NCBI RefSeq assembly: GCF_002571385.2 | Contig: NW_019218304.1 | Location: forward strand, 91,665 to 155,664 | DNA from: Stylophora pistillata | Lineage: Eukaryota | Length of the DNA stretch: 64,000 nucleotides | Reading direction: 5' to 3' | Part shown: in pieces, positions 9,237 through 56,251 of the stretch | How positions within the stretch are numbered: the stretch's first letter is position 1 | Layout: the number at the start of each line of letters is the position of its first letter | Program-made: the position numbers and the translations under genes | The notes under the pieces: generated by a model | The model's database searches: none | Seen by the model: the letters and a program-made list of their open reading frames with translations, nothing else | Told to the model about the DNA's origin: nothing

Positions 9237-12200
9237 ATGGCTGAATCGAGCGATGTCTCGGCTGTAAAAGTGTTTAATTATATCAGTGGAAGTGGTGGAG
9301 TTTTAGATTTATTGAGCTTACTGAAACATCCTTCGCCTTTGGCAAAGAAATCCACAGTGAATGAGGTGATTTTATGGTTCAAAACTCAGAAAGACATCGA
9401 CCCCAATAATAGATTGGTTTTGGTAAATAATCAACGTGGTGAGGCTGTTGGCGTGCGAATCGACTTAGCGAAACAATTGTGTTTAAAATACACCACCGAA
9501 GGGTCGTGTAAATCACGAAGCAGATGTAGATTCTGGCACTTATGCAAAGAGTTCCTTGAGGGAACTTGTAAAGGAAACTGTGGCCGATCACATGATTTTC
9601 ACGATGAAGACAACAAAGCGAAAATAGTGGAATTGGGTTTTGCAGGAAAAGCGACTGGGCCTTTGAAAACTATTGTTGCTGGAAGCTTCTTACAGGTTTG
9701 TCTCATGTATTCAAAAAATGGATGCGTCTCCCTAAATTGTCCGTATCTTCATATTTGTTTGAATGCGGCGCGTTTAACAGCCTGTGACTGTTTTCTGTCT
9801 CACAATTTCGCTGATCCCCACAATAGGAGCTTGCTACAACAGTATGGATACAAACCTCCCCGAACGTCAGAAATGGATGTCGTACGATGTAACATTCTGG
9901 TCCCTAAGCAGCAGAAATCCTTTGAAGGAAGGGCTATCGGTGACCCAAGCTTCATTAACCAACCCACACCCAGGGGAAGTGAGCCTGGTAATATTACACA
10001 GAAGTTTCCCCCGCGTCCGAGTAGACCTGGAGCTGTTAGTCTGGCAGGTTTATGCCAAAACTTTCCCAAAACTGAATCCAAAGCACCTACTCAATCTAAA
10101 CCAGCAATGCACCATATTGCTGTGCCTTCTAATGAAGACCCTCTCTTTGTGAAAGTTTTTAATTTCATATGTGCCAAGGGAGGTTACTCTTCATTAGCAG
10201 ACCTATTGCAACACCCCTCTCCATTGGCAAGGAAGTTTTCAACCTCTGAGGTCGATGCAACGATTTGGCTTCAAGTAAACACCCACTCAGAACAGGGACA
10301 GAAGATCATTTTGCTAGAGAACCAAAATGGTAATATTCTTGGTGCTCGGGTGAATTCTAGGAAAAAAATGTGTTTGCAGTATATGAAGGGTTCTTGTAAA
10401 TCTCTCAACACTTGTCAGTATTGGCACATTTGCAAAGGTTATCTTGAGGGAACTTGTCAGGGAGGCTGTGGTCTCTCACATGACTTCCATGATGAGGGTA
10501 ACATCAAGAAGATACAGAGATTGGACATCGAACAATATCCCAATGGAACTCTGAGGAAAATTATCTCTCACAGTTTTCCCAGAATTTGTTTGGCATACTT
10601 GAACACTGAATGCATATCCAGTCATGACTGCCCACATTTGCATATATGCCCTCTTGCTTTTGGAGGAAACCCATGCAGTTGTAACCTGTCACATGCTATA
10701 GATGATAACCATAATGCCACAATTCTAAAGCAGTTTGATTTAGATCCTCCGCGAACCAAATTATACCTAATGCAGTGCAACATCTTGATGCCAAAGAGGC
10801 AGAAAGGCCCAGCAGAAGGCAAGCTTGCCTCACGTCCAGCACCTTTGATGTCCTTGCCTTTAGCCCAAAAAGATGATAACCTGGATTCACAAGCCAAAGG
10901 GCTTCTAGATAAGAAGGGAAAGCAGAGGAGAAGGCAGCGAACGAAGGCGAGAAAAAAGACAAATCAAGCAAGCAAACCCAGTGAAGAATCACTTGCAGAT
11001 GATATCGAAGAGGGAGGTTCAGATTCAACCTCCGATAATGAAGATTTGCCCGACAAACCTGATCTTTACTCAGGATCAAAATTTTCGGCTCAGCCCAGAC
11101 CAAGCACAAGGCATGCTGATGGTTCAGAGAATCCATCCTTTCATTGTCAAAAGAAGCAGATGCAATCCGACAATGGGTTGACTTACCAAGACCAGGTTTC
11201 TGAAATGGGCATAAGTGAAACTCCTGAAAAAAATCTTATTAATTTTGATGAGCTAGAAGACGAATTGCAAGATTTGGAAGATCCATTTGGTTCACTAGAT
11301 GACTTCTCAACTTTTGAGCCTCTTTCTCAAGTTGATGATTTGCTCTTTAACCTGTCCCCCACAAATACTGCAGGAGCACTGTCTCAGGAGAGTACCTTTT
11401 TTGATCCATCTGACCAGGACAGCTCAGCAAGCAACCAAGAAAAACAAGCCGTAGACTCTGTTTTCCAGTACATTTGTAAAGAACACAATGGCGAGGCACC
11501 ATATGATGTAATATCCCAGTGCTACCACATACTTCCACCAGATGTTTTGGATATTTCTGCATGGTTCAGAGAAAACTCAAACAGGTTTATGATCATCGAG
11601 AACTGTGTGGGGGGAATTGAATTAGTAAGAGCACACACCTCTACAGCACGCATCTGTTTTCGGTACTTGATGAACAAGGCAGGCTGTAAGAATCCAAAGT
11701 GCTTCCGTTACCATGTCTGCAAGCATTATCTTGCTAACGGTGTCTGTCCTCTAGGAAAGAAATGCAGGTACAGCCAGAGTCATAATCTCAAAAGCTCACA
11801 CAACAAAAAAATCACTAAACAACAGAAGCTAACCTGTTTCTCAGAAGAGCAGCTACGTGTCATGATTTCTGCATCAGTCCCTGATGTTTGTCTTGCTTAC
11901 AACAAGAAATCAGCCAGATGTAAGAAAGGGCTACGGTGTCAAGCTGTTCATGTCTGTAAGTATTTTGTGATGGGCAGTTGCAAGAAAGGAACCAGTTGCC
12001 CTCTTAGCCACGAGGCAAGTCTCAAAGAACCCCATTCTCAGTTAGTTCTGGAGAAGTATAATTTGACCAAGGTTCCAGCCCAAGCTGTCTTAAGAGCCCT
12101 TCTGGTACGTGGGCAGCTGCTACCCTCAACAATGGAAACTGCAGAGGAACACGAAACAGGTAAGAAGTATAATCAATATTGCACCATTGTTACAAGAAAG

Positions 12201-25188: not shown

Positions 25189-28100
25189 TAGACTCCATGT
25201 TGTCGTGCGCCTGTTCAGTTATAAATCAAAGATGACGTAAAAATGTGGTAAAAAAAAAAAAAAAAAAATCACAAGAAGCGCCGCCAAGTGTTCCACTGAT
25301 GGTCTCACCGCATTTTGACATCTTCTGTGATCTCTTGATGTAGATACTCACGGCAACATGGAATCCAAATTTTTGATATGATAGGAGAAGAAAAATTTGT
25401 TGTCAATGATGACGCCCGTGTCCTCCCGGAGATCACAGGTATAAACCAATACGTACATAATTAAACGTAGCGTAGAAATGGGATTTAAAACTAACTAAAT
25501 GAATACAAATTAATATCTATGAACAAAGGAAGGAGCTTTGCGTAATCCCTCAAATTATTTATTTACGCTGAATTACTTAACATCACTTCATATTTATATC
25601 AATAAAAAAATAACTTCTTTTAACTTCACATTTTTCCCTTTCAACTCTGCACATAAATCAAAGCTATGAAACATACATCTCAGCTAAGTGCCTACGCTCG
25701 TGGCAAATAAATTAAACATCATTTTCAAAAACAATGAATTCCAAATTACGTCGCACAACTATTGTGTTGATTATTAATGAATACATCATACTAACTGTGT
25801 AAAACGGATTAACTTAACAAGCTATGGCGTCACTGAAAGTATTTTGATTAGTTTGTATATTCTCCATAATGTTGTCCACACCGTACCTACTGTGCTGACT
25901 CAGAGAAATCGTTTAACAATCAAGAGCTACTTAGGCTGGTGATCATTTCTTTTATTCTCTTGACCTTAATGTGTGATTCAGGGGTGATATTGTAAGGAGA
26001 AATTAGATATTAGGCACCCTTAGGGGTTAACCCTGTTTTCACCGCAGAAGAAGACATTCTAGCAAACACGACTTTCCTATTTCTTTATGGGGGAGGTAAT
26101 TTGAATCGTATATCAGATACAAACCTATCTGGCCGTGAGAAAGTCCTTGGTTATTTTGAAAATATTGCGGAACGAAGAACCACGTCATTACGTTGTTCAG
26201 TTTCCTTAGCAGAGGAAAGAAACGCTTTACCTTTTTCATACAGTTTACGAAACTATTCTTAAAGTAGATGTTATCTGTTTTTGGTTTCACACCATTACGG
26301 TTGTAATCTATCATCATCGTCATCGTCGTCGCTATCGTCATCATCAATGTTATCATCACAGCCATTAATATCGTCATCGCCATAGTCGTCGTTACCATGA
26401 TCATCATCGTTTTCGTTATTGTCATCATTATCGTCATCATCATCATTGTCATCGCTATCATCGTCATCATTGTTATCGTCATCGTTATCAATATTGCCAT
26501 CGTCATGACTATCGTCGTCATTATTGTTATCGTCATCGTCATCGCCACCATCGTAATCATCATCAACTTCGTCATTGTCATCGTCATCATTTTTGCTCTC
26601 TCCCTTTTTTGTCCAGAATTAAGTGCACAGGTTCTGTCTCCTTTAGTTGACATTATACGATTATCTACCATTATCTTGCTCTAATTTTTCCATTTTCTTA
26701 AGAATAAAGTACCTGAGTTCAGTCGCTGATAATCGAACTTACACTGGTCTTAGCCTTTCAGTCACGAAAAGAAAAAATCACTAACCACCGTAATTCTAAC
26801 CGCTGAAACGATCAAAATTTCGGTGATAGGACTAGGTGACTACAACGCGATTTCAAGAAATTCGATTCTGGGAGGTCTCTTAGTGAACAATGATTTTTGT
26901 ATTAGGATGACGTGTTTACATCCTTGCTACCATCCAGTTCAGATCACGCGTTAGTTACAACTAATGAGTTTGCTCATATTCCGTACAATTGGCTGTGTGT
27001 GAGAGACTTTTGAAGTCTAGCCCCCGCGTATGAATCGACACATGATTTGAATGAACGATAACAGGGATATAAACAGGTTGACCGACCCAATCTATTAACT
27101 CAATTGTACAACATTTTTACGTAATTTCTAAAACAGAAAAATAATGAATGTAAAAAGTCAAAGTCATTGCCCAAACCTACTTCTCTCTTAAGAGTTCAAC
27201 TCAAAGCTTTCTGCGCTTCTTAAGTTTTGTTCAGTGTTCTTTGTTAATTTTCTCTTTTGTCTACACTAATATAGAGTTTGTTTTGTTTTCTTTTAGGTTT
27301 TTTTTTTTTTTTTGGTACACTAGTTTGTGTGTGTATTTGTATTTTGCCTTGTTCTTGTTCGTCGAGTTTAGCCGCGAGGTCTCAAAACTTTGAAGATTTC
27401 TTTCAAGAAGTTTTTCCATTCTATCCCGATTGAAATAGACCTTTTGGTGCTCAAAATGAAAACACAATATACTAAATAATAATTGTGTCGAAAATATAAG
27501 CATGCAGCTCTTTTAAGCGACGAAGTCAGTTTTGGAGTTGAAAACAAAACTGAGTTTTCTGACTTCAACTGAGTTTTTGTGAAGTTGGTTAACTTTTCAT
27601 TGGAACGGTAAATATAAAGCTTCGTTTTTCCAACGGTTGATATCATTTTTAAGTGTTTTAAAATATTTCCTTTGGGAGATTTTGATTTTAAATCGTACAA
27701 TTTCAGAATTTTCAACAATTTTAACACAAACCTACGTAAATTTCCAGCTGTGAATTCTGAGCCGAAAATTTACAATGCTTTGAATACAGATTTAGTCTCA
27801 AATATTTCATGGTCGTTTTTGCCTTGTTCTCTATTCCTAGTTTTCGGGTAGAACACGATTACCTGGTAAACCCGAAACAGTTGACATAAGCTCTTCTTTT
27901 TCGTGCACACCTTGTGTTTGCATGCTATGCTATAAAAGAATTGGTTAACGCTTTAGCTGTGTTCGTATATCGAGTTATGGATGTCAAATTGATTACGTGC
28001 ATGCTTGAGAACTGTAGTGAACTTTTAGAAAAAATTTACGCATATAGCGCTCTTAAATTAGGGAACTTAAGAAAATAAAACTACTTTGAATAAATACAGC

Positions 28101-28925
28101 TTTGTCCATCACTAAACACAGACACACCTTCTCCTTCTTCGAAGTCACATTACCAAGCACTTGTCTTTGGAAGATTTCGATATCGAGGAGCTGCTGGGAG
28201 TTGACCAGTGGTGTGGCACACCAGACGTGTTTGTTGATGACGAATAATTTCTTGACGTTCCTGTGCTTGAGGTGTGCGATGAATATGTTGAACTATGAGA
28301 GCTTGCCGTACCCGAAGAGTAGCTCATGGCTGTACTGCGGTGCGGTGCGCCAAACGAGCTGTTAGAAGCTGAACCAAAACCACTCGATGCCCCACTACTG
28401 GACGAGTAATAACTACTGGTAGGATTAACGGAGCTTCTAGATGGCGCAGCTCGGCTATAAGAAGGTGTCTGAGCGGAACTTGGTGCTCCGCGAGCTCCGG
28501 AATTCCTACTACTTTCATCAGAATACTCGATGATGTACTCTGGGTAGAACTGGTCAGCGTCAAAAACCACATAAATGGTTGGACTGTACTGGTCGTCCAC
28601 ACAAGAGTCGAACAGGTCACTCGATGGGTTGGATGGTTGCTTTGGAGGCGGTCTCCGATAACTGGAGTTGCCTTTAGTGTAAGATCCAACAAGAACTTTT
28701 GCCAAGAACATGAACTGAAACGAATTCGCGTCTTTCTTCGCATAAGCATCGCTGTAGGAGGCATTTACAGCGAAATAACTTCCCTCGCCATAGACAGTGG
28801 CGTTCTTGCCGTTTAGGCGCCAGTCAAAGTTTTGCTTACATATGGCCTCCACAGCATCGGGGCTGGTTCCATGGAACAACCTCTTTTCGTTCAAAGAGTG
28901 ACTACCTCTCTTGATCGCTAACATG
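25189..28925. repeat. Copy 1 of a ~3.7-kb segmental duplication (PARP-B last exon and 3' flank)
   Basis: Colinear with 52571-56251, including a shared MITE, the ATC-rich tract and the terminal PARP exon. Confidence 0.9.
26308..26590. repeat. Degenerate (ATC/GTC)n trinucleotide repeat
   Basis: catcatcgtcatcgtcgtc...; it explains the low-complexity ORFs 26039-26671 and 26397-26684. Confidence 0.9.
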
Positions 28926-31900: not shown

Positions 31901-34900
31901 CTGTGAAAATGAAAACAGCAGTGTGACTGATGAAGAAGTTGCGAGATATGACTGAGCATATTTTCGGACTGATATTGCCACAGGATCATCGATTAATGCA
32001 ATACCTTTCTGTTGTCTTACAATGACCACAGATGGAAAATCATTGTAAAAAAAGCTGCTCATGACAAATAAAATTCAAGCAAGTGTAACTTTGCACTAAT
32101 ACTGTATCACAAATATTGCTAAATACATGTGCACAATCAAACTTGCGCTTTCTTGGTAAAAAATACCTGTTTCTCTGCTCTGTGCCAAATCGTCAAACAG
32201 CAAAATAGCCTTCTTCACTGCGCCTGGTTTCAAGTGATCGATTCGAAAACGCTCCAGAATTGCTCTGGTGTGATCAGTAGTCATGGCTGATTCATGCTCT
32301 AAGAGACAACCGCGTCCTTCTCGGGAACACTTTTTTAAGTGGTTGCTACACATGTGAATTCTAGGACAAGCATCGCCACGATCGCAGATACCATCGTTAT
32401 ACTCTACACAAATCAATGGCGAGGAAGACAGCACAAGCCGGCGAAGTTGCTCGTCTGTGAACTTTTCGAGGTTGATCTGAGACAGCAAAGCCTTATCCTT
32501 CTCGTTGCAAAATTGATGATTCCGAGGGCATGTTGCTCCGTTAGCACAGGAGTCAGTGATGTAATCTCTACAGATGTGCAAGAATGAGCAGTTGTCTTTC
32601 GCACAAGTTCCATAGTGGGCGTTGTTGTAACTGAAGCAGAGCCGAGCCTTTGCTGCAAACGCACTCACTTCTGTAATTTTCCCGTCTGGGTTTTCCAAGA
32701 TCAGAAAGCTCCCTTTTCTTTTACGAAACCAAGATTCCACGTCTTTGAATCCAGCAGGAAACAAATCAGTACGTTTAGAAATAACTGAAAACGTAACTGA
32801 GCAATTGTATTCCTTGCACAAGCACTCAAAGACTTTTCGTTCAGATGGTTCACCGCTGTTCCCAGAGGGAAAGATTTCTTTACGAATAGACCCAATCACA
32901 TTGGCTATATGATCAGATGGGTCACAAATGGCAATACCAGTAAGAGGTGAATGACCACTCCGCTGATAGCTAATGTTTTTGCTACCAGTTGCTCCTTTAG
33001 TCATAGTCGAGGGACTTGTCGTTGACACAGTGCTGGTTGTTTTGGCTACAGAAACAGATGTAAGTGAGAAATGGCTGGGACCACTCTGTTTCTTCTCTCC
33101 CTTGCTGTCAACTGCACTGATAGAAGACGACGTACTAGTTGCTGTTGAAATAGTGTCTTTAACAGGGGGGTTAATGTCGACTGAATGTTTCCTCTCGCAG
33201 ACCAGAAGGGCTCGCACAACTGGCTGAGTGTTACCATTCCTGACCTTCAAGCCATATCTATTGAGAACAGCGGTTGCATGAGCCGTCAGTAGAGCTTCTT
33301 CGTGCTCGAGACCGCAAATCGCCTGATCCGCACACTTCTTTCTTATCATATTCTTGCAAATATGTATCTTTCCACAACTCTCTCCAAGTACACAGTGTCC
33401 TTCGTTATAGTCAAGACATACTCGAGGTATTGACAGTTGAACGACCTTACGCAGCTGTTCTTCACTAAAGTCAGTTAACTTAAGTTTAGAAATGAACTTT
33501 CTGCTCTTATCGTACTCAAAACTGTGGTTTCTTTGACATCTACGGCCAAATCTACAAAACCCAGCAATGTAATCTCGGCACACGTGTATATAAGAGCATT
33601 CCTCTTTAGAGCAATGATCCTGGTTAAAACATAATTTTGCTCGTTGACAATGAACGTCCACTTTTACTGTTCCGTCTTCACTTTCCCTAAACAGAAAGCT
33701 TTCTTTCCTTGATTTGAACCATGCAGCGATATCTCCACATCCTTCAGGAAACAATTCTTTTTGTTTCGAGATAACAAGGAAAGGGACAGTACCATTGTAT
33801 TCTTTCAGAATGCAGTCAAACACTGCCTTCTTAGAGGGTGTGTTCTTTTGTGGATCTGGAACAGAGCTGCACGAACTTGAAATGGATGACTTTCGCTTGC
33901 GTTCCGCTGGTGTTTCTTCATTTTGAGAGTTTCTAGGGCTATGAGTGGAATCAGACGAATAATCATTTCCCAAGACCCATTTCTTTACCAAATCGTTTCC
34001 GCTATCATCAACGGGCAAAACGAACGGATCATTACGTACAGCGCTGGCTTTTCCTGCCCCACTTGAAATACAGAGATCCGCCTTTGGTTTCATTTGTGAC
34101 GTGGTTTTGGGTTTAAGAAATTTGCAATCATTTCCAGTCCCTTTGTTGCTTAGTTTTGACTCGTGAATCTGATGAAGCGATCGACTTTCATTCGCAGAGA
34201 GGAAGTTTTTAGAATCAGGTTTGTTGTCTTCTGAAGATGAGTCTGAGAGGCTTTCTTCCTCCTCGTGTATATTTAGAAACCCGGGATGTTTGTTAGAGCC
34301 CGCTGAAGCAGTCGCACAACTCGCCAAGTTGTTGTCGTACTTTGGTATACCCTTCTGTTTCCGCTCTTCCTTTGACTTTAACTGGTCAGGTTTTGGTCCA
34401 TTCCTCCTCGTGTCCACACTATCATTAGAAACCTCTCTGGATTTTGAGCCCGTATGATAATCGTTTGTTCCACCCGAGTTCGACTTGTGGCTTGCCCCAT
34501 GCTGTAAACTGTTTTCGTTTGTGTTATTCTGATTGACAAATTTTGTTAATTCTTCGGCTGGCGTAACCGAGGCCATTTCAACGGTAGTATCATCGCTTAT
34601 GAACTTGCCTTTGTCAAAATAACTCTGCTCTTTCATGATCAAAATACTGCTACAAACAAAGGCAGTGCTCATCGACTGATGTGGCACAAGGTCATACTGC
34701 TTCAGTATTTTCTTGTTGTTAACTTCAGTCAGATTATGCAATAGCCCACAACCACAGGGCAATTTTCGCACTACGTTCGGGCAAATATGAAGATATGGAC
34801 ATTTATCCGACTTACATTTATTTCTCAAATACAACTGACAAACCTGTGGTAGACTCCAGGCGATGATGTTCCGTAATGTTCCATTCGGGTGCTTCTCGAT

Positions 34901-35287
34901 TTTAAGGTCTTTGGTCTTCGCTTCGTTGTCGTTGTCGAAGAAATTGTGCGAACGATGGCAATTACCTTCGCAATTTCCCTCGATGTAGCTTTTACAAATG
35001 TGCCAGAATTTACATGAACCCCTTGTTCTTCTGCACGAACCTCGTTCAAGGTATTGTTGACAAATTTTCTTTTTCAGGTCGATGCGAACACCTCTGACTT
35101 CATCATCAATATCTTTCACCACAACAAAGCGGCCACGGCCGTGATTAATTAGCCAATTCTTCGCATCCAAGTTAGATTTAATGTCTTTCAAAGGCGATGA
35201 ATCCCTCAAAAGTAACGATAACTCTACAAATCCGCCACTACCACAAATAAAATTGAAAACTTTCTCGACCGAAACATCAGTCGCCAT
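28145..35287 (-). CDS. PARP12: PARP-B: ZAP/PARP12-like mono-ADP-ribosyltransferase with 3x (winged helix + 4 CCCH), CCCH, WWE, WWE, PARP, Ser-rich tail and CaaX; about 1598 aa
   Basis: Exons 35287-32167, 31900-31657, 31266-31050, 30754-30558, 29993-29769 and 28937-28145, all GT-AG, 4797 nt open frame, starting MATDVSVEKVFNF. Motifs: ICSDFLLGKCKKGMKCSGHH, LPYHWQY, WTWYWKDENG, VRRRP, LFHGT, NFDWRLNGKNATVYGEGSYF, PTIYVVF..QFYPEY. It ends KSSKDKCLVM*. The symbol indicates family only. Confidence 0.92.
29362..29563. mobile_element. piggyBac-like MITE in PARP-B intron 5
   Basis: Runs from ttaacccttaagagtgattagc to agggtcaaaggtttaa; same family as 7290-7502. Confidence 0.7.
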
Positions 35288-37655: not shown

Positions 37656-38177
37656 NNNNNNNNNNNNNNNNNNNNNNNNNNNNNNNNNNNNNNNNNNNNN
37701 NNNNNNNNNNNNNNNNNNNNNNNNNNNNNNNNNNNNNNNNNNNNNNNNNNNNNNNNNNNNNNNNNNNNNNNNNNNNNNNNNNNNNNNNNNNNNNNNNNNN
37801 NNNNNNNNNNNNNNNNNNNNNNNNNNNNNNNNNNNNNNNNNNNNNNNNNNNNNNNNNNNNNNNNNNNNNNNNNNNNNNNNNNNNNNNNNNNNNNNNNNNN
37901 NNNNNNNNNNNNNNNNNNNNNNNNNNNNNNNNNNNNNNNNNNNNNNNNNNNNNNNNNNNNNNNNNNNNNNNNNNNNNNNNNNNNNNNNNNNNNNNNNNNN
38001 NNNNNNNNNNNNNNNNNNNNNNNNNNNNNNNNNNNNNNNNNNNNNNNNNNNNNNNNNNNNNNNNNNNNNNNNNNNNNNNNNNNNNNNNNNNNNNNNNNNN
38101 NNNNNNNNNNNNNNNNNNNNNNNNNNNNNNNNNNNNNNNNNNNNNNNNNNNNNNNNNNNNNNNNNNNNNNNNNNNNN
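37656..38177. other. Assembly gap (others at 41650-41670 and 57558-58411)
   Basis: Runs of N. Confidence 1.
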
Positions 38178-39393: not shown

Positions 39394-39756
39394 CATAGTC
39401 GTAGGCTTGTGAGAGTGCAATGACTCCTTACCGTGTAACACAACTCGTACCGAAGATTAAAGCTGTTAAATGTCTTATAAGAGCGTAAAAGCTCTTACAA
39501 AAGCTGGAGTTATAACACAAGCCGGATCTGGGTACTTTGGCTTGTGTGACGAGAACTAACTCGTCAAACGATCACCTGGAAAAAAAAATTACTCGAGACC
39601 ACGCTTTAATCCAAGATGGCTGACTCAGACGCCATATGACGTTAGACCACGTGACATACGTTTTACTCTCGTCGACAAATAAATAAATAAATAAATAAAT
39701 CCGATGATGCCATATTGTGGCTACACAATCTGTGTAAGCCACACAAAAAGAGAGCG

Positions 39757-41402
39757 CGGAATGGAAGAACAAGGAATGAGGAATAAGGAATGGGGAATGG
39801 GGAATGAAGAACGAGGAATGGGAAACGGAGAACGAGGAATGGGGAATGGGAAATGTATAATTGGGAATGGGGAATGAGGAATGGGAAATGAAGGATGAGG
39901 AATGGAAAATGTAGAATAAGAATGGGGAGTCGGGAATGGGGAATGGGGAATGGGTAATGGAGAATGAGGAATGGAGAATGGGAATGGGGAATCTTCAAAA
40001 GCAGGAATCTTTAAAATGTGGAATTTTTAAAAGCGAGAGCTTTTAAAATGTGAAATATTTAAAAGTGAGAATCTTTAAAATGAGGAATCTTTAGACTGCG
40101 TGAGATGAAATCGACCAAATGAATGAGCGGTCTGAGGAGAAGTCGCTCTTTTTTCAATCTTACGCAAGTGAATTCCATCAAAATTCAAGACTGTTGACAC
40201 AGGTAAAACTACGCTACAATGGAAGGGCAGTCAGTAAATGTCTTCAACACTCAACATGATTAGATTGCTAAAATAATTTCAGCATCAGAATCATTATTTT
40301 GATCAACATGTTTCGCTGTGGCAATTCCCTACAAACCGTCGTGAACGACTCAATTTTTTGGTGTCTGTTCAGGTGTGAAATATACAAATTTGTCTAGACA
40401 AACTGTCGCGCTTCTTCATTCACAGTCATTGGAAATCCATACTGTCAGGCACCGACATTAATTTGAACGCATGACAAGGCTTTACAAACGACATTAAACA
40501 GGATTTGGCCGAAAATAAATCTTGATTAAAGGAAGTTTTGTAAATGCAGAGACACAAACACGGTAATTTGACGGTGGTGTGTACAGAAACTTTCACGTAT
40601 CATTGTTAATAAAATACGTAGAGAGCTGACTGTAACGAAAATACTCATTGAAGCGCGCTTCAGATTTCGAAACTTTATACTCATTTACGTTTCCAAAAAG
40701 CTTTTAAAACATTTCTTGGTTGCTTTATTGTCTGATATGAAATGTTCACCCGAGCATGACAGCGATTTTACTACAGTTGGACGATCAATAAGCATAATAT
40801 CTACTGTAACAAAAATTATAGTTCTTTGATGAAAAATCGCCGGCAAACGTGCTAAAAGTTCCGGCTGCCGCCGGCACCCGGCTGCTATTTTGAACCCTGA
40901 GGATAATACCGAAGAACGATGTAGATCAGAGTGTTCAATAATAATTACTAATAGGGCTGATAACTGACCTACCATCCAGGCTAATAAAAAAATAGTAATC
41001 GAGTGGCACCGCCATCCGCCGAAAAAATTGATACGTTTTTAAAGATTACTCGTTTTAAAGATTCTCTATTTTAAAGTTTTCCGCTTTTAAAAACTCCTCA
41101 TTTTAACGATTTTCCATTCCCCATTCCCCATTCCTCATTCTCCATTTCTCAGTTACTATTCTTCGTCTTCATTTCCAATTCCCCATTCCCCATTCCCCAC
41201 TTCCCACTCCCCATTCTCTATTCTCCATTCTTCATTCTCCATTCTGCATTCTGCATTCTCCATTCTCCATTCTTCATTCTCCATTCTCCATTTCCCATTC
41301 TCTTTTCTTCATTCTCCATTCTCCATTCTCATTCACTATTCCACATTCCTTATTTTCCGTTCTCCGTTCTTTATTCTCCATTCTCCATTCTCCATTCTCC
41401 AT
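39757..41402. repeat. Foldback-like element with inverted arms of (GGAAT/GGGGAAT/GAGAAT)n plus GAATCTTTAAAA repeats
   Basis: Purine-rich array and ttaaaa units at 39757-40095 are mirrored by the complementary array at about 41035-41402, around a ~0.9-kb non-coding core. Confidence 0.7.
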
Positions 41403-41674
41403 TAATCATTTATAAATTATGCTAGTAAAAGTGGCATATTATGCTAGTAGCATTGCTTTTTTTTTTGGCCAAATTATGCTAACATTATGCTCTTTTTTCC
41501 AAATTATGCCACCGTTTTTTTAAATTATGCTCTTTGAAAAAATGCAAATAAGTCCAAAATATATATTTTTTAACTAGAAGCCGTTCGTCTACAGGAAAGA
41601 AACGCAACAAATCCACAATGAATTTCAAATAAACATGTGGTTCAGGTTANNNNNNNNNNNNNNNNNNNNNGCTA

Positions 41675-45071: not shown

Positions 45072-48000
45072 ATGCCTGTCAAACACGCCTCAACAAAACG
45101 TAGCGGAAGAGTTCAACAGACCGATAAACCAGGGTGGGATGGTTTAAGTGGCAAGGTTTCCAACATGGTTGAACAGGCCAAGATGCTTTTTGATTCTTTA
45201 TTTACCATCATCTGGAATCAAGCAAAGAACATTTTCGACAAAATGGATCACTTGAGCGGTCATTCTTCTGCTGGTTACGCGGCAGTTGCGACGATAAAAG
45301 TTATCGCCATATTGTTCATGATTATTGTTGCGGTCGAGTGCATATTTCATTTTCGATCTTATTTCTGGTTGTTATGCGGATATTTGAGTTCTCTCCTATA
45401 TTTCGCTGCTGCGATAATAGTTCGAGGTGCAACTTTGATTTTGGCGAGCGTATGGGCTATTTTGAAGCATCTTTTCGACTTCATCTGGAAAATCCTTATG
45501 GGATCGATAAGAGTTGCCATCTATTACTTGAGGCCCACCATGTTATTCGCTTTCAGTGGCGCGACTACTGTTTTGCATGACCTAATTATAATTTTCTCAA
45601 GATGGGCCTTGAATCTTGGGATTGACTGGAGAAGTTTTTCTCAGCTGTTTTGTTTGTACGGCATGGTGAAAGTGGTTTCGCTTTGGATCAAACACGGCAC
45701 AAGAGTTTTATGTGACAAGATTTCTAGTGCCGTTGAACAGGTCAAAAGGCAATTTGATGCTATGTTTACCATCTTCTCTAACCATGCAAGGATTATTCAA
45801 GACAAACTGGATCGTTTTAGTCGACATTCATTCGCTGGTTACGCAGTGGCGGCGGCCATAAAGATTTGTGTCATGTTTGTAGTGACAGCCTTTGTTGTCA
45901 AGTGCGTGTGGATAATGCTTGGATATCTTTCTATAATATCAATCCAGATCTTGTATTTTTCTGTGATGTTTATCACTAGAGGCACGAGAATGCTCATGAA
46001 TTATATGAGTGCTTCCTGTGAGAATATCCTGATTTCCTTTTGGAAAACGTTGAAGGGCTCAACCATAACTGCCTTTCGTTTTCTTAAATCTTTTCCATTA
46101 CCTTCTTTTACTGTTGTGGCTCTTATTTTATCTTACGTTATAAGTATTTTGCAAATTTGCATTTTGTGTGGTGCATTGATTATTCTTTGTTCAAAGACTT
46201 GGAACAAATATAGAGGAAAAATTCAGCAAGGCGTCAGTTTCTGGATTGGTTTTTGCCACAATGTTTTCAGTACTACTACTCCGGCCAAGACAGGTTTTTA
46301 TTCTTTACTTGCCGCCTGCAAAAGCCTAGCAAGGGTAATTCAAGTCAAAATTGATTGTTTGAGAAGACATTCGTCGGCTGCTAACATGATAGTGAAGGCG
46401 ATCAAAATTGTTGGTATTTTGTTTGTGGTTACCCTTACAGTCGAGACCGTCTTTCATTTCAGATCATATTTTTGGTTGTTGCTACGATTTCTAACTTACC
46501 TCCTACACCTGGCCGTGGCATACATCATCAGAGTTCCAAGCGTAATCTGGAAAAATCTGGTTGCTATTTTAGAGTATGTTCGAAGAGCTAACTCGGAGAT
46601 CTTCCTGGTACTCACCAAACTTGCCCTTGAGCACCTAACAACGATCTCTTCGCTTGCTTCAAATTACTCCAGTGTTTTAAATTACCAAACTAAATCGATC
46701 TCAAAGACTACCGTCAATTTAACAAAGAGCTGGAAGGGTATTTTACAAGTATGCCTCTTGCTTGGGGTACTAGCGCTGGTGTTACTTTGGCGTCTCAGGG
46801 CTAAAGCTTTTAGTAGGAACTTGTTACGAGGTAATGTACTTGCTGTTGAATGGTTGGCCGAGGCTAAAATATGTGACTGACTGCCAACTGATGGGGAGTG
46901 ACATACCAATCAGTCGAAAAGACCGACTGACAGACCAGCCAACCGACTTACTTATTACTGACCGCTTGATCATGATTGGCAGACGAAACAACCAACAAAA
47001 CGACCGACTGCCTGAGTGACGCACTGGCTTGACTGGCTGGCTGGATGACTGACTGACTGGTTGGCGGAGAAGAGGTCGCGCAGTTGTTTGCGCTGACTAC
47101 CTAATCAACTGAATAGGTTTGATTTATAGATTGACCTGTTGATCTTTGAAATGATGTATTACCCTATTTTTTTTTACACCTTTCCGTAGCAGCTGGTTGT
47201 GAGTCCACGCCTTACTGTTGGCAGTTCAAAGAGGAAGATTCGTATTCCTGGAGAACCTTTGGCCCTTCTGACAATGAGGCTTTGGAAGAGCTTTATTGTG
47301 ACGTGGATAATCTGGAAGTTAACGTGAACCTTAAAGATACTGCATTGAGGTAGGACAAAAGAGGAAAGAGTGAAAGGCTATATTCATTAATGTCATAGGA
47401 GGGCACTGCACATGTTTAGTCGAGTAGTTGGATATGTCGTCATTGCAAACACTGTACCGTGTTTATCAGCATGCAATATTAATGAGATCTAGAGGTAAAC
47501 AATAGTCTTAACGGCTTTGCACCATTTGGTATCGGTAATGAATTTGTCAGAATTGCGCGGAGAAATGTTTTTGATTGTTTCTTAAAATGATTAGGTGTGA
47601 TTGCCCGGTTTGATCGTGCAGGCAATCCTCGCTCTGATTAAGACCTTCGCCGTTAGTAGTGACTAGCATTTTAATTACTAAAGCAAACGTCATCGTCAGA
47701 ATTAAGCGAATCCTTGACTCTGAAACTGCCATCCCTCAGGCTGTAAAAATGTTAGTCAGTGAAATTATAACAATCCCTTTCGGGAATGCCTTCATCCGGA
47801 CGTTAAGACTAGTACTCAATCCTTCTTCTTTGCAGCATTTTTATGAAGTCAGCATCACAGATGTCAGTTAATTACGAAGAGATGTCCATGAACTCGCCCT
47901 CCTCTGTCCAGTTCTTGCTCCGTCGATGCTCAACACCGTCATACGTTCAGGAGCCGAACAACAAGTCATCTACACAGTGGGTTTGGTATTGGAAAGACAA

Positions 48001-49729
48001 CAATGGTTGGAAGAAATACGCTGAAACGATAGTAAGAAGTAGTAGAGAGAAATGATTTTGTAATACAAAATATTTGTAATCAAAAGCTTCCGTAAGTTTT
48101 CGTTTTATACAAGGCTCTGTGTTACATGCACTGACTTTGACGTTGAAGTGTGGTGAATGGCGTCTTGTTTGAGTACGTGAGCGCATTTGATAAGTCAATA
48201 CATTATAGTTTTTGGTGACTGCAGTGCACCTGGCTTGAGAAAATATGCTTTTGGACTCACTCTATTTATGTGGAGTTACACAGATAGGCCTTACTTTTCA
48301 TCTTCTTTTTTAGCAGTCATCTGGCGCTAAACAAGAAAAGATAGAAGCTGCCTATTTGAATGATGAACGCACTTATTCCTTTGGAAGTGGTTCACACAAT
48401 TACATTCTCAAATTCTGCGAAACACCAATGTACCAAATGAATACGGACCCAGACCTCCTTACCAAGCGACAAGTTAGAAGGAGGCCATTGTTTGCTTCAA
48501 AATCAGAACCTCAGGACACCAATAGGCAAGTGGCTGCGGATTGCTACTCACTGATATGCAATCCGAAAGGAAGGGATTTGGCCTGCTCGATTGACATAAA
48601 GCAACCCCTTATTTGCTGTCGTCTCAATTGTAATCGACAGGAAGGGTTGGGGTCTGTCAAAGTTTGACGTCTTATAGTGTGCGCGTTATCATCAAGGAGG
48701 AAGCAGGTGTCCTTGTTGAAATACACATTTGATTCCGTTTTCATTTTTAATACCATCATCAGTTCTTTAAAACCTTGGTGTTGCTAAAAGCTGCACGTAT
48801 ATCCCTGTAATTGTAGCAAGTGGTCACCCATTTCCGTTTATCTAGCACATTTCATTTTTCAATCTATTTAGGTATCTGAGAGGCAAAGCTAAAGATTTTG
48901 AACGAACGCGTTTGGAAAAGGACTGTAAGGAATACCGAACTGTAAGTCAGCGTTTTCATGAAACATTGCCGGAACACAAGGCTTCCATATTGATGGTGGA
49001 AAAAATTCAGAATGACGAGTTGCGTGAGAGATACGAAAGGTGAGACTTTTATGCTAAGATATTTTAAGAAACGGTTAATACGATGTACAGCAAATAAAGG
49101 TTGTGTGCAGAAATTACTAGGAACAGCTACACATGTACATAGTGTCTAAGGCTTCAGCCACAATAATCTTGTTTTTCTTCTAGTTTGACTTTGCCTAAGT
49201 CACGGCAGTCGGCCATTAGGTTAGTTTAACTTAGCCACCAAACGCCTCACAACTACACTCTTACTGATCAATCTTCTCTGTGTCTTTTTCCCCCTTCAGT
49301 AAGCGCGAACGAATTCAAAGGAAACTAACACTTAGAGGGCACGATGAGATTGAAAAGTTTCTGTTCCATGGTACAGCATCAGACGTTGTTGATGCCATCT
49401 GCAAACATAATTTTGACCACAGATTGCGAGGGAAGAATGGGACACAATACGGAGAAGGGAGCTACTTTGCTGTAAATGCCTCCTATAGTAATAACTATAC
49501 TGAAAGTGATGGCAAGAGAACGAGGTATATGTTTCTGGCAAGCGTGTTAACTGGTGAATCCAAGCTTGGACGTAGAAACTTACGTCGACCGCCTTTGCAA
49601 GATCCAAGTAATCTTACCAGCGATTTGTACGATTCTTGTGTTGACGACGAAAATCAACCAAAGATCTATGTCATTTTTAACGACGAACAGTGCTATCCTT
49701 CATATTTGATTAAATATGTCTTGAAATAG
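45072..49729 (+). CDS. PARP-C: predicted multi-pass membrane WWE-WWE-PARP mono-ADP-ribosyltransferase; about 974 aa
   Basis: Exons 45072-46830, 47190-47349, 47836-48031, 48314-48525 (GC donor, AG|GCAAGT), 48872-49039 and 49300-49729 give a 2925-nt open frame with the same intron phases as PARP-A and PARP-B. Exon 1 is 586 aa of hydrophobic repeats. Downstream motifs: PYCWQF, WVWYWKDNNG, VRRRP, FLFHGT, NFDHRLRGKNGTQYGEGSYF, YDSCVD, KIYVIF..QCYPSY. Confidence 0.8.
46875..47080. repeat. Degenerate (GACT/GACC)n tetranucleotide repeat in PARP-C intron 1
   Basis: gactgactgcc..gaccgactgacagaccagcc..gactggctggctggatgactgactgactgg. Confidence 0.75.
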
Positions 49730-50819: not shown

Positions 50820-50960
50820 CAACGTTAAAAGTGAAAAGGGTGAATATCGCGAGGGAAACCATCGATCAACTTTCCGTTTCAAACGCGCGTTCGTACTTTT
50901 TTTTTATTAATGTTGACACGGTATGAAACGAAACCGAAAATGTTAACTTCACTTTCGTAA
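50820..50960 (+). promoter_or_regulatory. IRF/ISRE-rich relic promoter of the PARP-C-like pseudogene
   Basis: GAAACGAAACCGAAAA at 50925-50940, TTCACTTTC at 50948-50956 and AAGTGAAAAG at about 50829. The region is partly homologous to the PARP-C upstream sequence at about 44860-44920. Confidence 0.5.
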
Positions 50961-51131: not shown

Positions 51132-51290
51132 ATGATGCCTCTAAAGAACGATTCCAGGAGACATCTCGGAAGCCTTTAACAGACCGAGTGGAATGGTTTA
51201 CGTAGCAAAATTTTCGATACGGTTAATCAGGCCAAGATGCTCGTTGATTCTTTTTGTACCATCATCCGTAACCAAGCAAGGATGATTTCC
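51132..51290 (+). pseudogene. Truncated duplicate of the PARP-C 5' end
   Basis: Reads MMPLKNDSRRHLGSL*QTEWNGLRSKIFDTVNQAKMLVDSFCTIIRNQARMI against PARP-C MPVKHASTKRSGRVQQTDKPGWDGLSGKVSNMVEQAKMLFDSLFTIIWNQAKNI. There is an in-frame TAA at 51177, the 5' UTR also aligns, and homology stops at a LINE. Confidence 0.8.
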
Positions 51291-51304
51291 TTTGATGATT
51301 CACT

Positions 51305-52228
51305 TTAAAAAATTTACCATAATACTCTTTCCTCACCTTACATAAATTATGGCTGTTTAATATGGGCATCTACCTATGCTTCATACCTTAAACCCCTTTA
51401 TGTACTTCAAAATAAAGCCGTTCGTATAATTACTTTTTCTCTTCTGCGTACATCCTCTAAACCCCTTTTTCTAAGCATAATATTCTTTCACTTTACTCTA
51501 TTTATAAATTCCATGTTGCCTGTTTTGTATTCTCACATTTTAATAACCTTTTACCTGCTCCTGTTTCCTCGATGCTTCATTTTAATTCTGAATATCACAA
51601 TTATTTGACTCGTTCACGTTTTAATCTACATGAAACCTGTCATAAGTATCAATTTGCTATCACTTGGCAAGCTCCTATTATTTGGAATGATATTCCGTTA
51701 TCTGTACGCAATAATCTCACAGTAAGTAACTGCAAAAAAAATCTTAAGACTGTATTTTTCTGTGAGGAGTTAATAATTAGCCTACGCATAATCTTATGAA
51801 TAAAGATTTGGAAATGCAAAGACAAGCAAAACCCAACAATAAAAACCGACGTTTCGGTGTCATCATGACGCCATTGTCAAGGAGAAGTAAAAATTACAAA
51901 GTCTGCGGCAAGGTGCATGCCTTATGGGACTATATTAGGTGTATTTGTTTTATTTGTTTGTGTGGTTTATGAATTTATTATTAGTTGTTTAAATATTTAA
52001 ACTAGTTGCCAAGTATTGTATCTCAATTGTAAGTTTTTTTTTTCTGACTGACCTTCTCTTTCTTGGTTTAATTGTATTGTAATTATTTTAAGTCAAGCTT
52101 TCTTCTACTCTTGTAAATTCTTTTGCTGACCCTTGGCCATTTAAGCCCGCGGCTTTGGCTGTTCTTGTATATTTTTTTCCTCCAGTGTGTGAGGAATAAA
52201 GAAAATAAATAAAAATTAAAAATAAAAA
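51305..52228 (+). mobile_element. CR1/L2-group LINE 3' fragment with a nested Penelope terminal piece (~51800-51910)
   Basis: Encodes YINYGCLIWASTY...LYVLQNKAVRIITF...PLF...HNYLTRSR...APIIWNDIP, with an A-rich tail at about 52195-52228. The nested gacgtttcggtgtcatcatgacgccattgtcaagg is identical to the copy starting near 24428. Confidence 0.8.
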
Positions 52229-52570
52229 CAAGATAGATCATTTGGGTGGACATTCTTCGGCTAGTTATGCGTTAGTTGTCGCGATAAAAATTGTTGCCAT
52301 ATAATGATGATTATTTCTGCAGTCGTGTGCGTATATCATTTTCGATCTTGGTTCTGGTTATTGTGTGGATTATCGATTTCCCTCGCTCGTTACGCTGCAA
52401 AAATAATAATGAGTTGCGCAATGTATGCCTTCTATGGCATCTCGAGAATCGCAATATATGGCAACTCTCAGTGATCCCACTGGGATCGCTGAGAGATATC
52501 ACATATTACCTCAGGTTCAATACGTAGTTCGCATTATATGGCGTGTTTACTGTTTTGCATTACTGAAATA

Positions 52571-55500
52571 ATAGATTCCATGTTGCTGTGCGCCAGTTCA
52601 ATTTTAAATCAGAAATAACGTCAAAATGTGATAAAAACACAAAAAATGGCACAAGAGGCGCAGCCAAGAGTTCCACTGATGGTCTTACCACATTTTGGCA
52701 TCTTCAGTGATCTCTTAAGGTAGATACTCACGGTAGCATGACTCTATATTGTTGATATGATAGAAGAAGAAAAATGTTGTTAATGATGACGCCAACTATG
52801 CCTTTTTCCTCTAATAGCTCGTAAGTAACAACCAATCGAAATGTATCCATTATTCAGCCCATTTAACTAGATGAGTACAAATAAATATCATTCTGTGAAC
52901 AAATGCAGAAGCTTTGCGTAATCCCTCAAATTATTTATTTACGATAGATTATTTAACATAATTAAAAGGATATATTTTAACTTTCTATTTTTTCTTTATG
53001 CACATGAATGAAACACATTGAAAATACATCTCGAGGCATAAAAAAAAAATTAACATCATTCTCAAAAACAATGAATTCAGCATTGCATCTCACAACTATT
53101 GTGTTGAGTTTTAGTGATTAAATCATACTGATTGTGTAAAATGGATTACCTTAACAAGCCAGGACGTCACTTAATGTATTTTCTTTGACCCCGTTTGCAC
53201 CACAGAAGGAAACTTTCTAGAAAATACGACATTTTTGTTTCGGCATAACCAGGGTAATTTGGATCGTATATCAAATACAAACCTTGTTCGTTTCGTTATT
53301 TTGAAAATATACCTTTAAACGTTGTCCCCTTTCCATAACGAAGAAAGGTGACGAATTAGCTTTTTTAAAGAGGTTAAGAAACCATTCTTTGAGTTAATGT
53401 TATTATTTGCTTTCGTGTCGAAAGTTATCATCCGTCACCATCGTCATCGTCGTCGCTATCGTCATCATCATTGTTATCGTCATCGTCATCAACATCGTTA
53501 TCGTCACCGCCATGGTCATCATCATTTTTATCGTCATTGTCATCTACATCGTCGTCATCATCGCTATTGTCATAATTCTTTTTATAGTCATCGTCATCGT
53601 CGTCGTTATCATTATCAACGTCGTCATCGTCATCGACATCATCATCATTTTTACTCCCAATGTTCCTTTCTTTGTCAAGAATAAAGTGCATAGATTCTGT
53701 CTCTTTGAGTTGACATTATTATTTGTTTTATCATTATTACGATTATCTGTCATTTTTATCCACATCATTATCGTAATCGTCATCATGTTATCATTATCAT
53801 CATCATCATCATTATTGTTGAACTCATTTTTCCTTTTTCGGAAGAAATGAAGTACCTGAGTTCTGTCGCTGATAATTGAACTTAAACTGGTCTTAGCCTT
53901 TCACTTACATCCACGAAAAAGAAGAAAGAAAAGAAGAAATTCAATTCTGGGAAGTCTCTCAGTGAATAATGATTTATGTATATGAATAACATGTTTACAT
54001 CCTTGCTATCATCCATTTCAAAACATGCGTTAATTTATTGAGGCAATTAAAACTACAGCTTTTTTCATATTCCCTACACTCGGCTGCGTTTGGGAATTGG
54101 TAAATTCCAGCCTCCTCTTTTGATTTTGATGAACGATAACAGGAATATAAACAGGTCGATCGACACAATCTGTTCATTGAATTGTACAGCAATTTACGTA
54201 ATTTCTGAGAAAAAATATAAGTTATGTTATTGCCCAAACCCAATTCTCTCTTTTAAAGAGTTCAACCTCAAGCTTTCTGCGCTTCTTAAGGTTTGTTTAC
54301 TCTTCTTTGTTAGTTTTTCTGTTTTCTTTTTAGTCTAGAGTTTGTTCTTGTTTTCTTTTATGTTTTTTTTAATTTTTTACACTGGTTTGTGTGTGTGTGT
54401 AATTTGCCTTGCTCTTGTTCGTCGAGTTAAGCTACGAGGTTTTAAAACTTTAAAAATTGTTTTTTTATTCTATACCGATCGAAATCGACCTTTTGGGGCT
54501 CAAAATGAAAAGAAAATATCCTGAATAATACTTTTGTCAAAAAATAAATAATAATAATAAGCCTGCAGCTCTTTCAAGCGACGAAATCAGTTTTGAAGTT
54601 GGAAACAAGAATGAGTTTTCTGACTTCAACTGAGGTTTTTCGAAGTTGGTAACTCTTCATTGGGACGGTAAATATTATTTAGAATTGTTGATATGTCTCA
54701 AATGAAAGTATTGTTCAAAGGAAGATTTTGTTTTAAAATCGTACAATTTTCAGAATTGTCAACTGACAAAGTTACGCAATTTTCTGGTGGGTAAATTCTA
54801 GTAATCACTACAAGAACAATAAATCTACCACCCGAGTCTCGCAAAGGCAAAGAAATTGCATGTTTATCGCTTCGTTTTTCAAACGGTTTATATCATTTTT
54901 AAGTGTTTTAAACTATTTCCCATAGCATATTTTGATTTTAAAGTCGTACAATTTCAGAATTTTTAAAGTGTTTAACACAAACCTACGCAAATTTCCTGCT
55001 GTGAATTCTAGTAAACAACGATTCAAAACGCTGAATGTACTACTCGGTTTCGTGCATTCAAGAAACTCGTTCGTTTTTCGCTTCTGAGCCGAAAATTTAC
55101 AATTCTTTGAATAAAGGTTTAGTCTCAAAATATTTTATGGTCGCTTTTTCCTTGTTATCTATTCCTAGTTTTAGGATAAAACACTATTACCTGGTAAACC
55201 CGACACATTTTTCATAAACTCTTCTTTTTTGTGCACAACTTGTTTCTGCATGCCATGCTACAAAAGAATTGGTTAACGCTTTAGCTGTGCGTATATCAAG
55301 TTATGATGTCAAATTGATACGTGCATGCTTGAAAACTTGAGCTTTTCGAAGAAATTTACGCCCTCAGTGCTCTTAAATTAAGGAAATCCAAGAGAATAAA
55401 CCTTCTTTCAAGAAATACAGCTTTGTACATTACTAGTAGAAACACAGACACACCTTCTCCTTCTTCGAAGTCACATTACCAAGCACTTGTTGTCACTGGA

Positions 55501-56251
55501 AGATTTCTTTGTCGAAGAGCTGCTGGGAGTTGACCTGTGGTGTGGCACGCCCGAAGTGTTCGTTGATGATGAATGATTCCCTGAAGTTCCTTTGTTTGAG
55601 GTGTGCGATGAATTTGTTGTAATAAGAGAGCTCGGAGAACAACCCGAATTGTACGGAGTGCCAGACGAGCTGTTAGAAGCTGAGCCATAAGTAATTGATG
55701 CCCCACCAGTGGATGAGTAAGTAACTACTTGTAGGATTAACTGAGCTTCTAGATGGGGTAGCTCGGCTAAAAGAAGGTGCTGCATAGGCTCCTGCCCGAG
55801 CGGAACTTGGTGCTCCGCGACCTCCAGAATACCTACTACTTTCATCAGAATACTCGATGATGTACTCTGGGTAGAACTGGTCAGCGTCAAAAACCACATA
55901 AATGGTTGGACTGTACTGGTCGTCCACACAAGAGTCGAACAGGTCACTCGATGGGTTGGATGGTTGCTTTGGAGGCGGTCTCCGATAACTGGAGTTGCCT
56001 TTAGTGTAAGATCCAACAAGAACTTTGGCCAAGAACATGAACTGAGACGAATTTGCGTCTTTCTTCGCAAAAGCATCGCTGTAGGAAGCATTTACAGCGA
56101 AATGACTTCCTTCAACATAAAGATGGGTGATCTTTCCGTTCGAGCGCCAGTCAAAGTTTTGCTTACATATTGCCTCCACAGCATCGGGGCTGGTTCCATG
56201 GAACAACCTCTTTTCGTTCAAAGAGTGACCGCCTGTCTTGACCGCCAACAT
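52571..56251. repeat. Copy 2 of the ~3.7-kb segmental duplication
   Basis: Colinear with 25189-28925. It lacks the MITE found at 25860-26030 and includes the ATC-rich tract at 53425-53815. Confidence 0.9.
55471..56251 (-). pseudogene. PARP-D: orphan copy of the PARP-B terminal exon (PARP domain and CaaX tail)
   Basis: Close to PARP-B exon 6, but the splice acceptor and first 13 nt are replaced by unrelated DNA. GSYF is changed to GSHF (NAD-binding Tyr lost), and a +1 frameshift near 55720 moves DNKCLVM* out of frame. Confidence 0.85.

Follow-up and report, generated by a model that had tools for sequence, protein, structure and literature searches.

How is one kind of ADP-ribosylating enzyme sent to different places in the cell? 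Zinc-finger PARPs (PARP7, PARP12 and PARP13) are central to vertebrate antiviral defence, and their location in the cell decides their function. The question is raised here by a stretch of 64,000 nt from the stony coral Stylophora pistillata, hereafter the window (positions 91665-155664 of contig C519, NCBI NW_019218304.1; G000:C519:91665-155664, in an assembly of 398 Mb). All positions below are those of the window unless a contig is named. The window contains three intact six-exon genes, which we call A, B and C, and which encode PARP12-like proteins with the same domain order at their C-terminal ends. Comparison of the gene models indicates that in this early-branching animal one five-exon enzyme cassette is re-targeted in at least three ways, either by swapping of the first exon or by addition of a tail.

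The shared structure was found by comparing all stop-to-stop open reading frames (ORFs) of the window with one another, which yielded three collinear sets of six ORFs each. In each set, one large first exon is followed by five small 3' exons that encode WWE1-WWE2-PARP, and the intron phases (1,2,0,2,2) are identical across A, B and C. Every model is open throughout, its only stop being the terminal one, and all introns are GT/AG except intron 4 of C, which is GC/AG. The splice sites of A and B were picked from GT/AG candidates by frame and junction homology. Database searches used single exons, or the public protein P0028 in the case of A; joined translations served for local alignments and locus searches only. 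Pfam placed WWE within exons 2-4 and PARP within exons 5-6 of all three genes (PARP E-values from 2e-17 to 2e-23; for B, WWE E 7e-9 and PARP E 5e-20). The family zf-CCCH_PARP12 was found in exon 1 of A and of B, and none was found in exon 1 of C. The identity between the three cassettes is only 35-39%. An initial annotation of this DNA, made from its letters alone, had described three intact WWE-WWE-PARP paralogues with one catalytic chassis and differing targeting parts. The exon models, intron phases and Pfam matches bear out the first of these statements, and the comparison of cassettes, heads and tails bears out the second. The coordinates of all features are collected in Table 1.

Table 1. 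Genes, relics and assembly gaps of the cluster (window positions, except for gene D, which lies beyond the window)
Feature	Position	Strand	Content and basis
Gene A	9.2-16.4 kb	+	
Gene A, exon 1	9237..12159	+	three ZAP-N-terminal-type modules; Pfam zf-CCCH_PARP12, E 5e-13
Gene A, exons 2-6	12930-13230, 13547-13742, 14389-14576, 15251-15505, 15938-16376 (including stop)	+	fifth CCCH finger, WWE1, WWE2, PARP
Relic of alpha-type module (first zinc-finger module)	20758..20937	-	60-aa N-terminal piece; two stops
Gene B	35.3-28.1 kb	-	
Gene B, exon 1	32167..35287	-	three CCCH modules, ATG at 35287; Pfam zf-CCCH_PARP12, BLAST against A, module alignment
Gene B, exons 2-6	31900-31657, 31266-31050, 30754-30558, 29993-29769, 28937-28145 (including stop)	-	fifth finger, WWE1, WWE2, PARP, tail
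Assembly gap	37656..38177		522 N; between B and C
Assembly gap	41650..41670		21 N; between B and C
Gene C	45.1-49.7 kb	+	
Gene C, exon 1	45072..46830	+	membrane head, three repeats of ~190 aa; hydropathy, repeat comparison, RNA contigs
Gene C, exons 2-6	47190-47349, 47836-48031, 48314-48525, 48872-49039, 49300-49729 (including stop)	+	WWE1, WWE2, PARP, without fifth finger
Relic of C-type membrane head	51135..52560	+	head fragments; in-frame stops, frame changes, interruption of ~0.9 kb
Relic of last exon of gene B	55537..56251	-	C-terminal part of PARP and tail; without exons 1-5
Gene D	C519:157127-162757 (L001:1463-7093)		1.5 kb past the window end; C-type head of about two repeats and full cassette

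The catalytic region found its best Protein Data Bank (PDB) match in PARP12, both with the PARP exon of C (8xpx, E 1.6e-33) and with the PARP domain of A (2pqf, E 1e-33). Weaker matches followed to PARP15 (1e-28 to 1e-29), PARP14 and PARP10, and those to ZAP were far weaker (1e-19 to 1e-21). Judged by these E-values, the catalytic domain would be closest to that of human PARP12. The motifs LFHG, G-x-G-[SA]-Y-F and P-x-I-[FY]-V-x-F are all present in A, B and C. The triad His (in LFHG) and Tyr (in G-x-G-S/A-Y-F) are kept in the three genes and in their homologues. At the third triad position A, B and C have Ile, placed before [FY]-V-x-F, and the adjoining candidate position is occupied by Leu, Val or Ile; the third residue is thus hydrophobic under either position, the choice between the two having been inferred from an alignment of PARP1 and PARP12. 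By this pattern A, B and C look catalytically active and of the mono-transferase type, unlike ZAP, whose triad is degenerate and which is inactive. Only a relic copy of the last exon of B has exchanged its triad Tyr for His.

The cassette upstream of the catalytic domain resembles the central domain of ZAP (7kzh), which comprises the fifth finger, WWE1 and WWE2 and is matched by residues 993-1200 of A at E 1e-5. The fifth CCCH finger is present in A and B and not in C. Exon 4 of B aligns with WWE2 of ZAP and with the WWE domain of PARP11, the glutamine of its 'M-x-Q' being in register. Both W-x-W-Y and M-x-Q, the latter holding the pocket Gln of WWE2 at the position of ZAP Q668, are kept in A, B and C. 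In ZAP, binding of poly(ADP-ribose) needs Q668 and the aromatic W611 (PMC8853533). Since the pocket Gln and the aromatic motif are kept, binding of ADP-ribose by WWE2 of A, B and C is plausible.

The heads of A and B are built from modules of ~230 aa, each with a winged-helix-like start and four CCCH fingers; in A, low-complexity linkers lie between the modules. When the six modules of A and B were aligned, the invariant columns were mostly Cys or His, with the spacing of four CCCH fingers. The modules fall into two types, with identities of 41-43% or 30-41% within a type and 23-27% between types, so that A reads alpha-alpha-beta and B reads alpha-beta-beta. Module 3 of A matches the RNA-binding domain of ZAP (6uei, E 7e-10), and the CCCH modules of A and B presumably bind RNA. 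The model of A, 1433 aa long, matches the public protein P0028 (LOC111341797) at every residue. It ends in KSKLVC (16365-16376), and its orthologues in Oculina and Montipora (P0042, P0053) end in KSKVVC, the basic C-terminus with a final Cys being kept. This end does not conform to the canonical prenylation box; it might be acylated. Head to head with A, whose ATG lies at 9237, is an ORF with a STEEP1 domain (8256-8543, minus strand; Pfam E 3e-10). STEEP1 is the STING endoplasmic reticulum (ER) exit protein, a STING-trafficking factor.

Gene B adds to the same kind of head a distinct tail. Its 1598-aa model aligns without gaps at every junction with NCBI models from Porites (P0100, 52%) and Montipora (51%). 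The tail consists of a Ser-rich stretch of ~125 aa followed by the basic end KSSKDKCLVM, in which the codons of CLVM occupy 28159-28148. Homologues end in KKNKCLVM (Porites lutea), in KKPKCSIM, KKPKCSVM and KKEKCLVS (Montipora foliosa) and in KKKRKCSVM (Oculina patagonica), and in each full-length homologue the CaaX box and its basic stretch follow a low-complexity tail. The end of B thus has a Cys at -4, two largely aliphatic residues, a basic stretch upstream and conservation across species. That it is kept in both major groups of stony corals speaks for use of the CaaX signal. A CaaX box in which X is Met or Ser predicts farnesylation, and an adjoining basic stretch constitutes a second signal of the K-Ras4B type. 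The tail therefore predicts that B is farnesylated and attached to acidic membranes. Protein searches with exon 1 of B gave no public match at 100%; the closest was a paralogue on contig C186 (LOC111332135, 75%).

Gene C, which encodes 974 aa (975 codons with the stop), carries a head of another kind. It has 10-13 hydrophobic segments, and A and B have zero. The three repeats of this head match each other at E-values from 1e-11 to 1e-30, and each is composed of an amphipathic helix, a conserved D-x-L-S-G-H-S-S-A-G-Y, hydrophobic helices and a basic end. Because the last helix is followed by the basic stretch R-L-R-A-K, the arrangement fits a cassette that faces the cytosol. The head has no Pfam family. 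Thirty-five relatives were found among 1.84 billion representatives, many of them single-unit ORFs of 200-270 aa; a JGI metagenome scan found no relatives, and the Protein Atlas gave no usable match. AlphaFold modelled the whole head with a predicted local distance difference test (pLDDT) score of 38 and a predicted template modelling (pTM) score of 0.22, and one repeat with a pLDDT of 80 and a pTM of 0.31, so that the helices are confident and their packing is not. Both models are poor, and Foldseek returned nothing from the PDB.

The RNA evidence for C comes from contigs of four polyA RNA-seq runs from two studies. All five introns were seen as spliced joints in frame: 46830/47190, 47349/47836, 48031/48314, 48525/48872 (the GC-AG intron) and 49039/49300. 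The first of these, which joins head and cassette, is GT..AG and was seen in runs X3 and X10 only, both of one study, with flanks of 28 nt. Contigs that retain intron 1 were present in all four runs, and retention would end the protein at 46878, giving a membrane-only product. One RNA contig of 2.5 kb contains the head exon, the retained intron 1 and the spliced exons 2-3. Since this contig spans the region from the head to exons 2-3, head and cassette share one transcript. A contig retaining intron 4 (48526-48871), the GC-AG intron, was also present in all four runs. Near the start of the gene, between 45145 and 45184, contigs of runs X11 and X13 break off with unrelated loose ends on both sides; the break may stem from an indel between alleles or from an alternative form inside the first 40 codons of C.

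The junction of membrane head and cassette is found elsewhere as well. The protein P0166 has repeated membrane units and then runs straight into WWE1 (P-Y-C-W-Q), and P0173 has one membrane unit, a fifth-finger-like motif and then WWE1 (P-F-C-W-Q-F-R). The same fusion occurs at gene D and in a genomic copy on contig C186. Since P0166 and P0173 pass from membrane units directly into the cassette, the fusion is, on these reading frames, recurrent and no accident of this locus. That C might consist of two unrelated neighbouring genes was considered and rejected. In a protein search with the C head, the only public counterpart was a 571-aa ORF from the assembly of a public run (P0001, 99% identical), which ends within the read-through tail of exon 1. 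Among proteins of 0.55-1.75 times the query length, which is the range that the searches cover, neither B nor C had a public model.

The targeting parts named in the initial annotation agree with these results. RNA-binding modules and an end in KLVC had been attributed to A, and Pfam, the 6uei match and the gene model support both. The combination of CCCH modules, presumably RNA-binding, with a CaaX box in B was likewise confirmed, and the signal is kept in other corals. For C, the polytopic membrane domain is upheld by hydropathy, and in RNA it is spliced to the cassette. The statement that A has no recognisable anchor is literally true, but its basic, Cys-ending C-terminus is conserved and may matter.

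The family extends beyond the window. Gene D, which follows on the same contig, is 52-78% identical to C and has an in-frame stop in exon 5 (L001 5933-5935); it is probably dead in this assembly. Approximately 15 copies of the last cassette exon are spread over contigs C519, C94 (at least five), C186, C1252, C133 and C1180, and other C-type heads are found on C186 and C94, several of them with stops. The region C94:700000-770000 holds at least five cassette copies with no recognisable zinc-finger head, together with scattered fragments of C-type heads and transposon-sized ORFs between them, and C186:9000-49000 holds C-type heads and a frameshifted cassette. Heads of other types may be present on the C94, C186 and C1252 copies.

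For the last PARP exon, a maximum-likelihood tree was computed from 25 sequences, all from corals, with midpoint rooting for drawing only. It leaves out partial exons in which fewer than 110 positions were matched (the C186 copy and the C94 copies at 749 kb and 765 kb), P0028 (which equals gene A) and the first PARP domain of P0139. In this tree, A groups with proteins of Oculina and Montipora (100/100), and all other sequences form a second group (100/100). Within the second group, C, D and the copies on C94 and C1252 make up one clade (100/98), and B and its relic are joined by a CaaX protein of Oculina (88/91). Because A and B group with other corals and C with other contigs, A, B and C are by this tree three old lineages standing side by side, and no recent local burst. 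Only the relic of the B exon and gene D look like recent local copies. The cluster had initially been called lineage-specific; in the sense of a local, monophyletic expansion, this is contradicted by the tree of coral homologues, where A, B and C do not come together, by the cassette identity of 35-39% and by the ~15 copies on at least six contigs. In one of the tree proteins, P0139 of Oculina patagonica, a PARP domain occurs twice (215-356 and 1075-1218), alongside two WWE regions, and the model is probably the product of two adjacent family members merged by annotation.

A cassette profile run over all six-frame ORFs of the window detected one extra piece only, at 55676-56287 on the minus strand. 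It belongs to the relic of the last exon of B, whose PARP part is 87% identical to B in amino acids. The relic has a frameshift near 55720 and keeps the CLVM end in the shifted frame. It lies in a 4.5-kb segmental duplication, in which 24395-28925 was copied at 51815-56252 in the same orientation with 67-89% DNA identity. The duplicated segment holds the last exon of B and ~3.7 kb downstream of it, and its boundary is situated 12 nt inside the 5' end of the exon, short of the acceptor. No WWE domain was found in any relic of the window by this profile. Two relics had been said to share the chassis of the intact genes; one relic does hold a part of the cassette, namely the last exon of B, the others are head fragments, and a WWE domain is absent from all of them.

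An interferon-stimulated response element (ISRE)-like motif, GAAANNGAAA, occurs 15 times in the window, compared with 7.9 expected, and one copy is near the ATG of B. There, the ISRE-like core GAAACTGAAA occupies 35297-35306, 10 nt upstream of the ATG. The dead C-type relic has two other copies upstream of it (50871-50880 and 50930-50939).

In this stony coral, we propose, the genes belong to a multigene family evolving by birth and death, whose products are PARP12-like mono-ADP-ribosyltransferases. A phase-1 intron links the cassette, (fifth CCCH finger)-WWE1-WWE2-PARP, to large first exons that would be interchangeable, and the head or tail would set the place of action: on cytosolic RNA for A, on RNA and the inner membrane face for B, and within the membrane for C. 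The Ser-rich tail of B, with its basic stretch and a CaaX box ending in Met, would cause B to be farnesylated and to attach to acidic membranes, in the manner of K-Ras4B and, by convergence, ZAP-L. WWE2 would bind an ADP-ribose unit, and the PARP domain would mono-ADP-ribosylate nearby targets or the protein itself. Gene families that serve in defence typically turn over in copy number, contain numerous pseudogenes and swap heads. An innate, probably antiviral, role for A, B and C is our best guess, because the copies turn over in a defence-like manner, human zinc-finger PARPs act against viruses (PMC11784840), and the two PARP12-like genes of Nematostella are strongly induced, and among the most induced, by 2'3'-cGAMP (PMC11784840).

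As a whole, the explanation that A, B and C belong to a family of swapped-head PARP12-like enzymes with an innate, probably antiviral, defence role has in our estimate a probability of about 0.6. Several observations weigh against it. The C head is without a recognisable fold, and its topology, hence the side on which the enzyme would lie, is argued only from the basic residues after the last helix. The exon 1-2 joint rests on short flanks from two runs of one study, and in the two remaining runs C appeared only in the intron-1-retaining form. The strict ISRE-like pattern gives no consistent promoter signal, with no copy near A or C and none in the spacer between A and STEEP1. The RNA could also mean that C mainly makes two products, a membrane-only protein by intron-1 retention and possibly a head-less WWE-PARP, the fusion being minor or accidental. 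With this would agree the retention in four of four runs as against a spliced joint in two of four, the end of P0001 in the read-through tail of exon 1, the existence of stand-alone single-unit proteins of the same membrane family, and a contig depth that is higher over exons 2-6 than over exon 1, although depth is unreliable. We nevertheless consider this distinctly improbable. The joint is GT..AG, in frame and of phase 1, as in A and B; one contig unites the head with spliced exons 2-3; P0166 and P0173 run from membrane units directly into WWE1; head and cassette recur together at gene D and on C186; and the PARP exons of head-bearing copies constitute a clade of their own (100/98).

The genes lie next to one another within 40 kb and have a common exon structure, which might suggest a recent, lineage-specific local expansion with A, B and C derived from one another inside the cluster. 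With cassettes only 35-39% identical, with nearer relatives of A and B in other coral families and of C among the C94 and C1252 copies, and with recent local copies confined in appearance to the relic at 55.5-56.3 kb and gene D, such an origin is hardly tenable. A different objection concerns the role and not the family. PARP12 works at the Golgi and at stress granules, and PARP16 takes part in the response to ER stress. The family could be real and, by analogy, serve housekeeping or stress, with the anchors placing ADP-ribosylation at secretory or endosomal membranes. The domain evidence fits this equally well, gene C is present in ordinary polyA RNA of unchallenged-looking coral samples from two studies, and the promoter search gave no consistent element of the interferon type. 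On the other hand, defence families typically have high copy numbers, numerous pseudogenes and swapped heads, cnidarian relatives are among the most cGAMP-induced genes (PMC11784840), and a STEEP1 domain lies head to head with A, which may be a coincidence. We regard a purely housekeeping or stress role as unlikely. The defence reading can be extended, tentatively and with more doubt than belief, as follows. The ~190-aa unit could be a new, apparently coral-restricted membrane module, which exists alone or in one to four or more copies and was repeatedly plugged by phase-1 shuffling onto a PARP12-type cassette. The resulting integral-membrane mono-ADP-ribosyltransferases might guard endomembranes, such as virus replication membranes or the symbiosome, and form with their RNA-binding and farnesylated siblings a compartment-resolved defence, in which regulated retention of intron 1 would switch C between an anchor alone and an anchor with enzyme.

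How do these genes compare with known systems? A and B resemble PARP12 in having an N-terminal ZAP/PARP12-type CCCH module and a fifth finger, and the family shares with it two WWE domains and a His-Tyr-hydrophobic triad. The differences lie in the heads and tails: PARP12 has one CCCH module and A and B have three, C has a membrane head in place of the fingers, and B has a Ser-rich tail with a CaaX box, which PARP12 lacks (PMC8568172). The likeness to ZAP (PARP13) lies in module 3 of A (6uei), in the central domain of A (7kzh) and in the kept pocket Gln of WWE2. The long form ZAP-L ends in the CaaX box CVIS, and its CVIS and farnesylation are required for membrane location and antiviral strength (PMC8568172). 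In contrast to ZAP-L, the CaaX box of coral B follows a disordered tail of ~125 aa and a K-Ras4B-like basic stretch. Because ZAP split from PARP12 within vertebrates (PMC8102003), we judge the coral CaaX box to be an independent, convergent gain. A ZAP-L-like lipid anchor would then have arisen separately on an enzyme that still looks catalytically competent.

The PARP12-like genes reported from cnidarians, in Nematostella and, for Acropora, in trees of ZAP and PARP12, belong to the same family and have a 'PAR-binding-PARP' architecture, that is, poly(ADP-ribose)-binding and PARP parts (PMC11784840, PMC8102003, PMC4245714). These papers give one or two copies per invertebrate genome, as opposed to ~15 cassette copies and three head or tail types in Stylophora pistillata, and they make no mention of membrane heads, triple modules or CaaX boxes. 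For C, the closest parallels are PARP16 and a 'PARP12-like' protein from a sponge that has a transmembrane region at its N-terminus; both fix a PARP enzyme in the membrane (PMC4245714). PARP16 differs in having a single C-terminal tail anchor and no WWE domain and in belonging to another PARP clade (clade-6); C has multiple N-terminal segments, WWE domains and a catalytic domain nearest to PARP12. The sponge protein was described as a transmembrane region and PARP only (PMC4245714), and C has a triplicated polytopic head of ~190-aa units from an undescribed family, plus two WWE domains. The literature searched yielded neither triple RNA-binding modules, nor a conserved CaaX box on an invertebrate member whose catalytic residues are intact, nor a WWE-WWE-PARP protein with a polytopic head. 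Cnidarian PARP12/ZAP-like genes as such were already known, and these three features appear to be new. A predicted integral-membrane WWE-PARP with an undescribed head is thereby added to the group, and A, B and C offer natural experiments on the control of ADP-ribosylation by location as well as a gene set for work on coral immunity.

The remaining features of the window concern its assembly and the neighbours of the cluster. Both N gaps are situated in the intergenic stretch between B and C (35.3-45.07 kb), and they touch no coding exon of A, B, C or the relics. Frame and continuity across the gaps are therefore irrelevant to the finding, and the possibility that they interrupt a gene was rejected. 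The second gap is flanked by repeats (39751-40080 against 41370-41037, 72% identical), inverted and tandem, within 39751-41411. Upstream of the cluster, a DDE_1 transposase fragment (759-1547, plus strand; Pfam E 2e-21) marks a transposon remnant. Between A and B, an open frame of 305 aa with several hydrophobic segments occupies 22217-23131 on the minus strand; it has a weak match to Cation_efflux (E 2.5e-5, under the cut-off) and looks like an unrelated membrane-protein exon.

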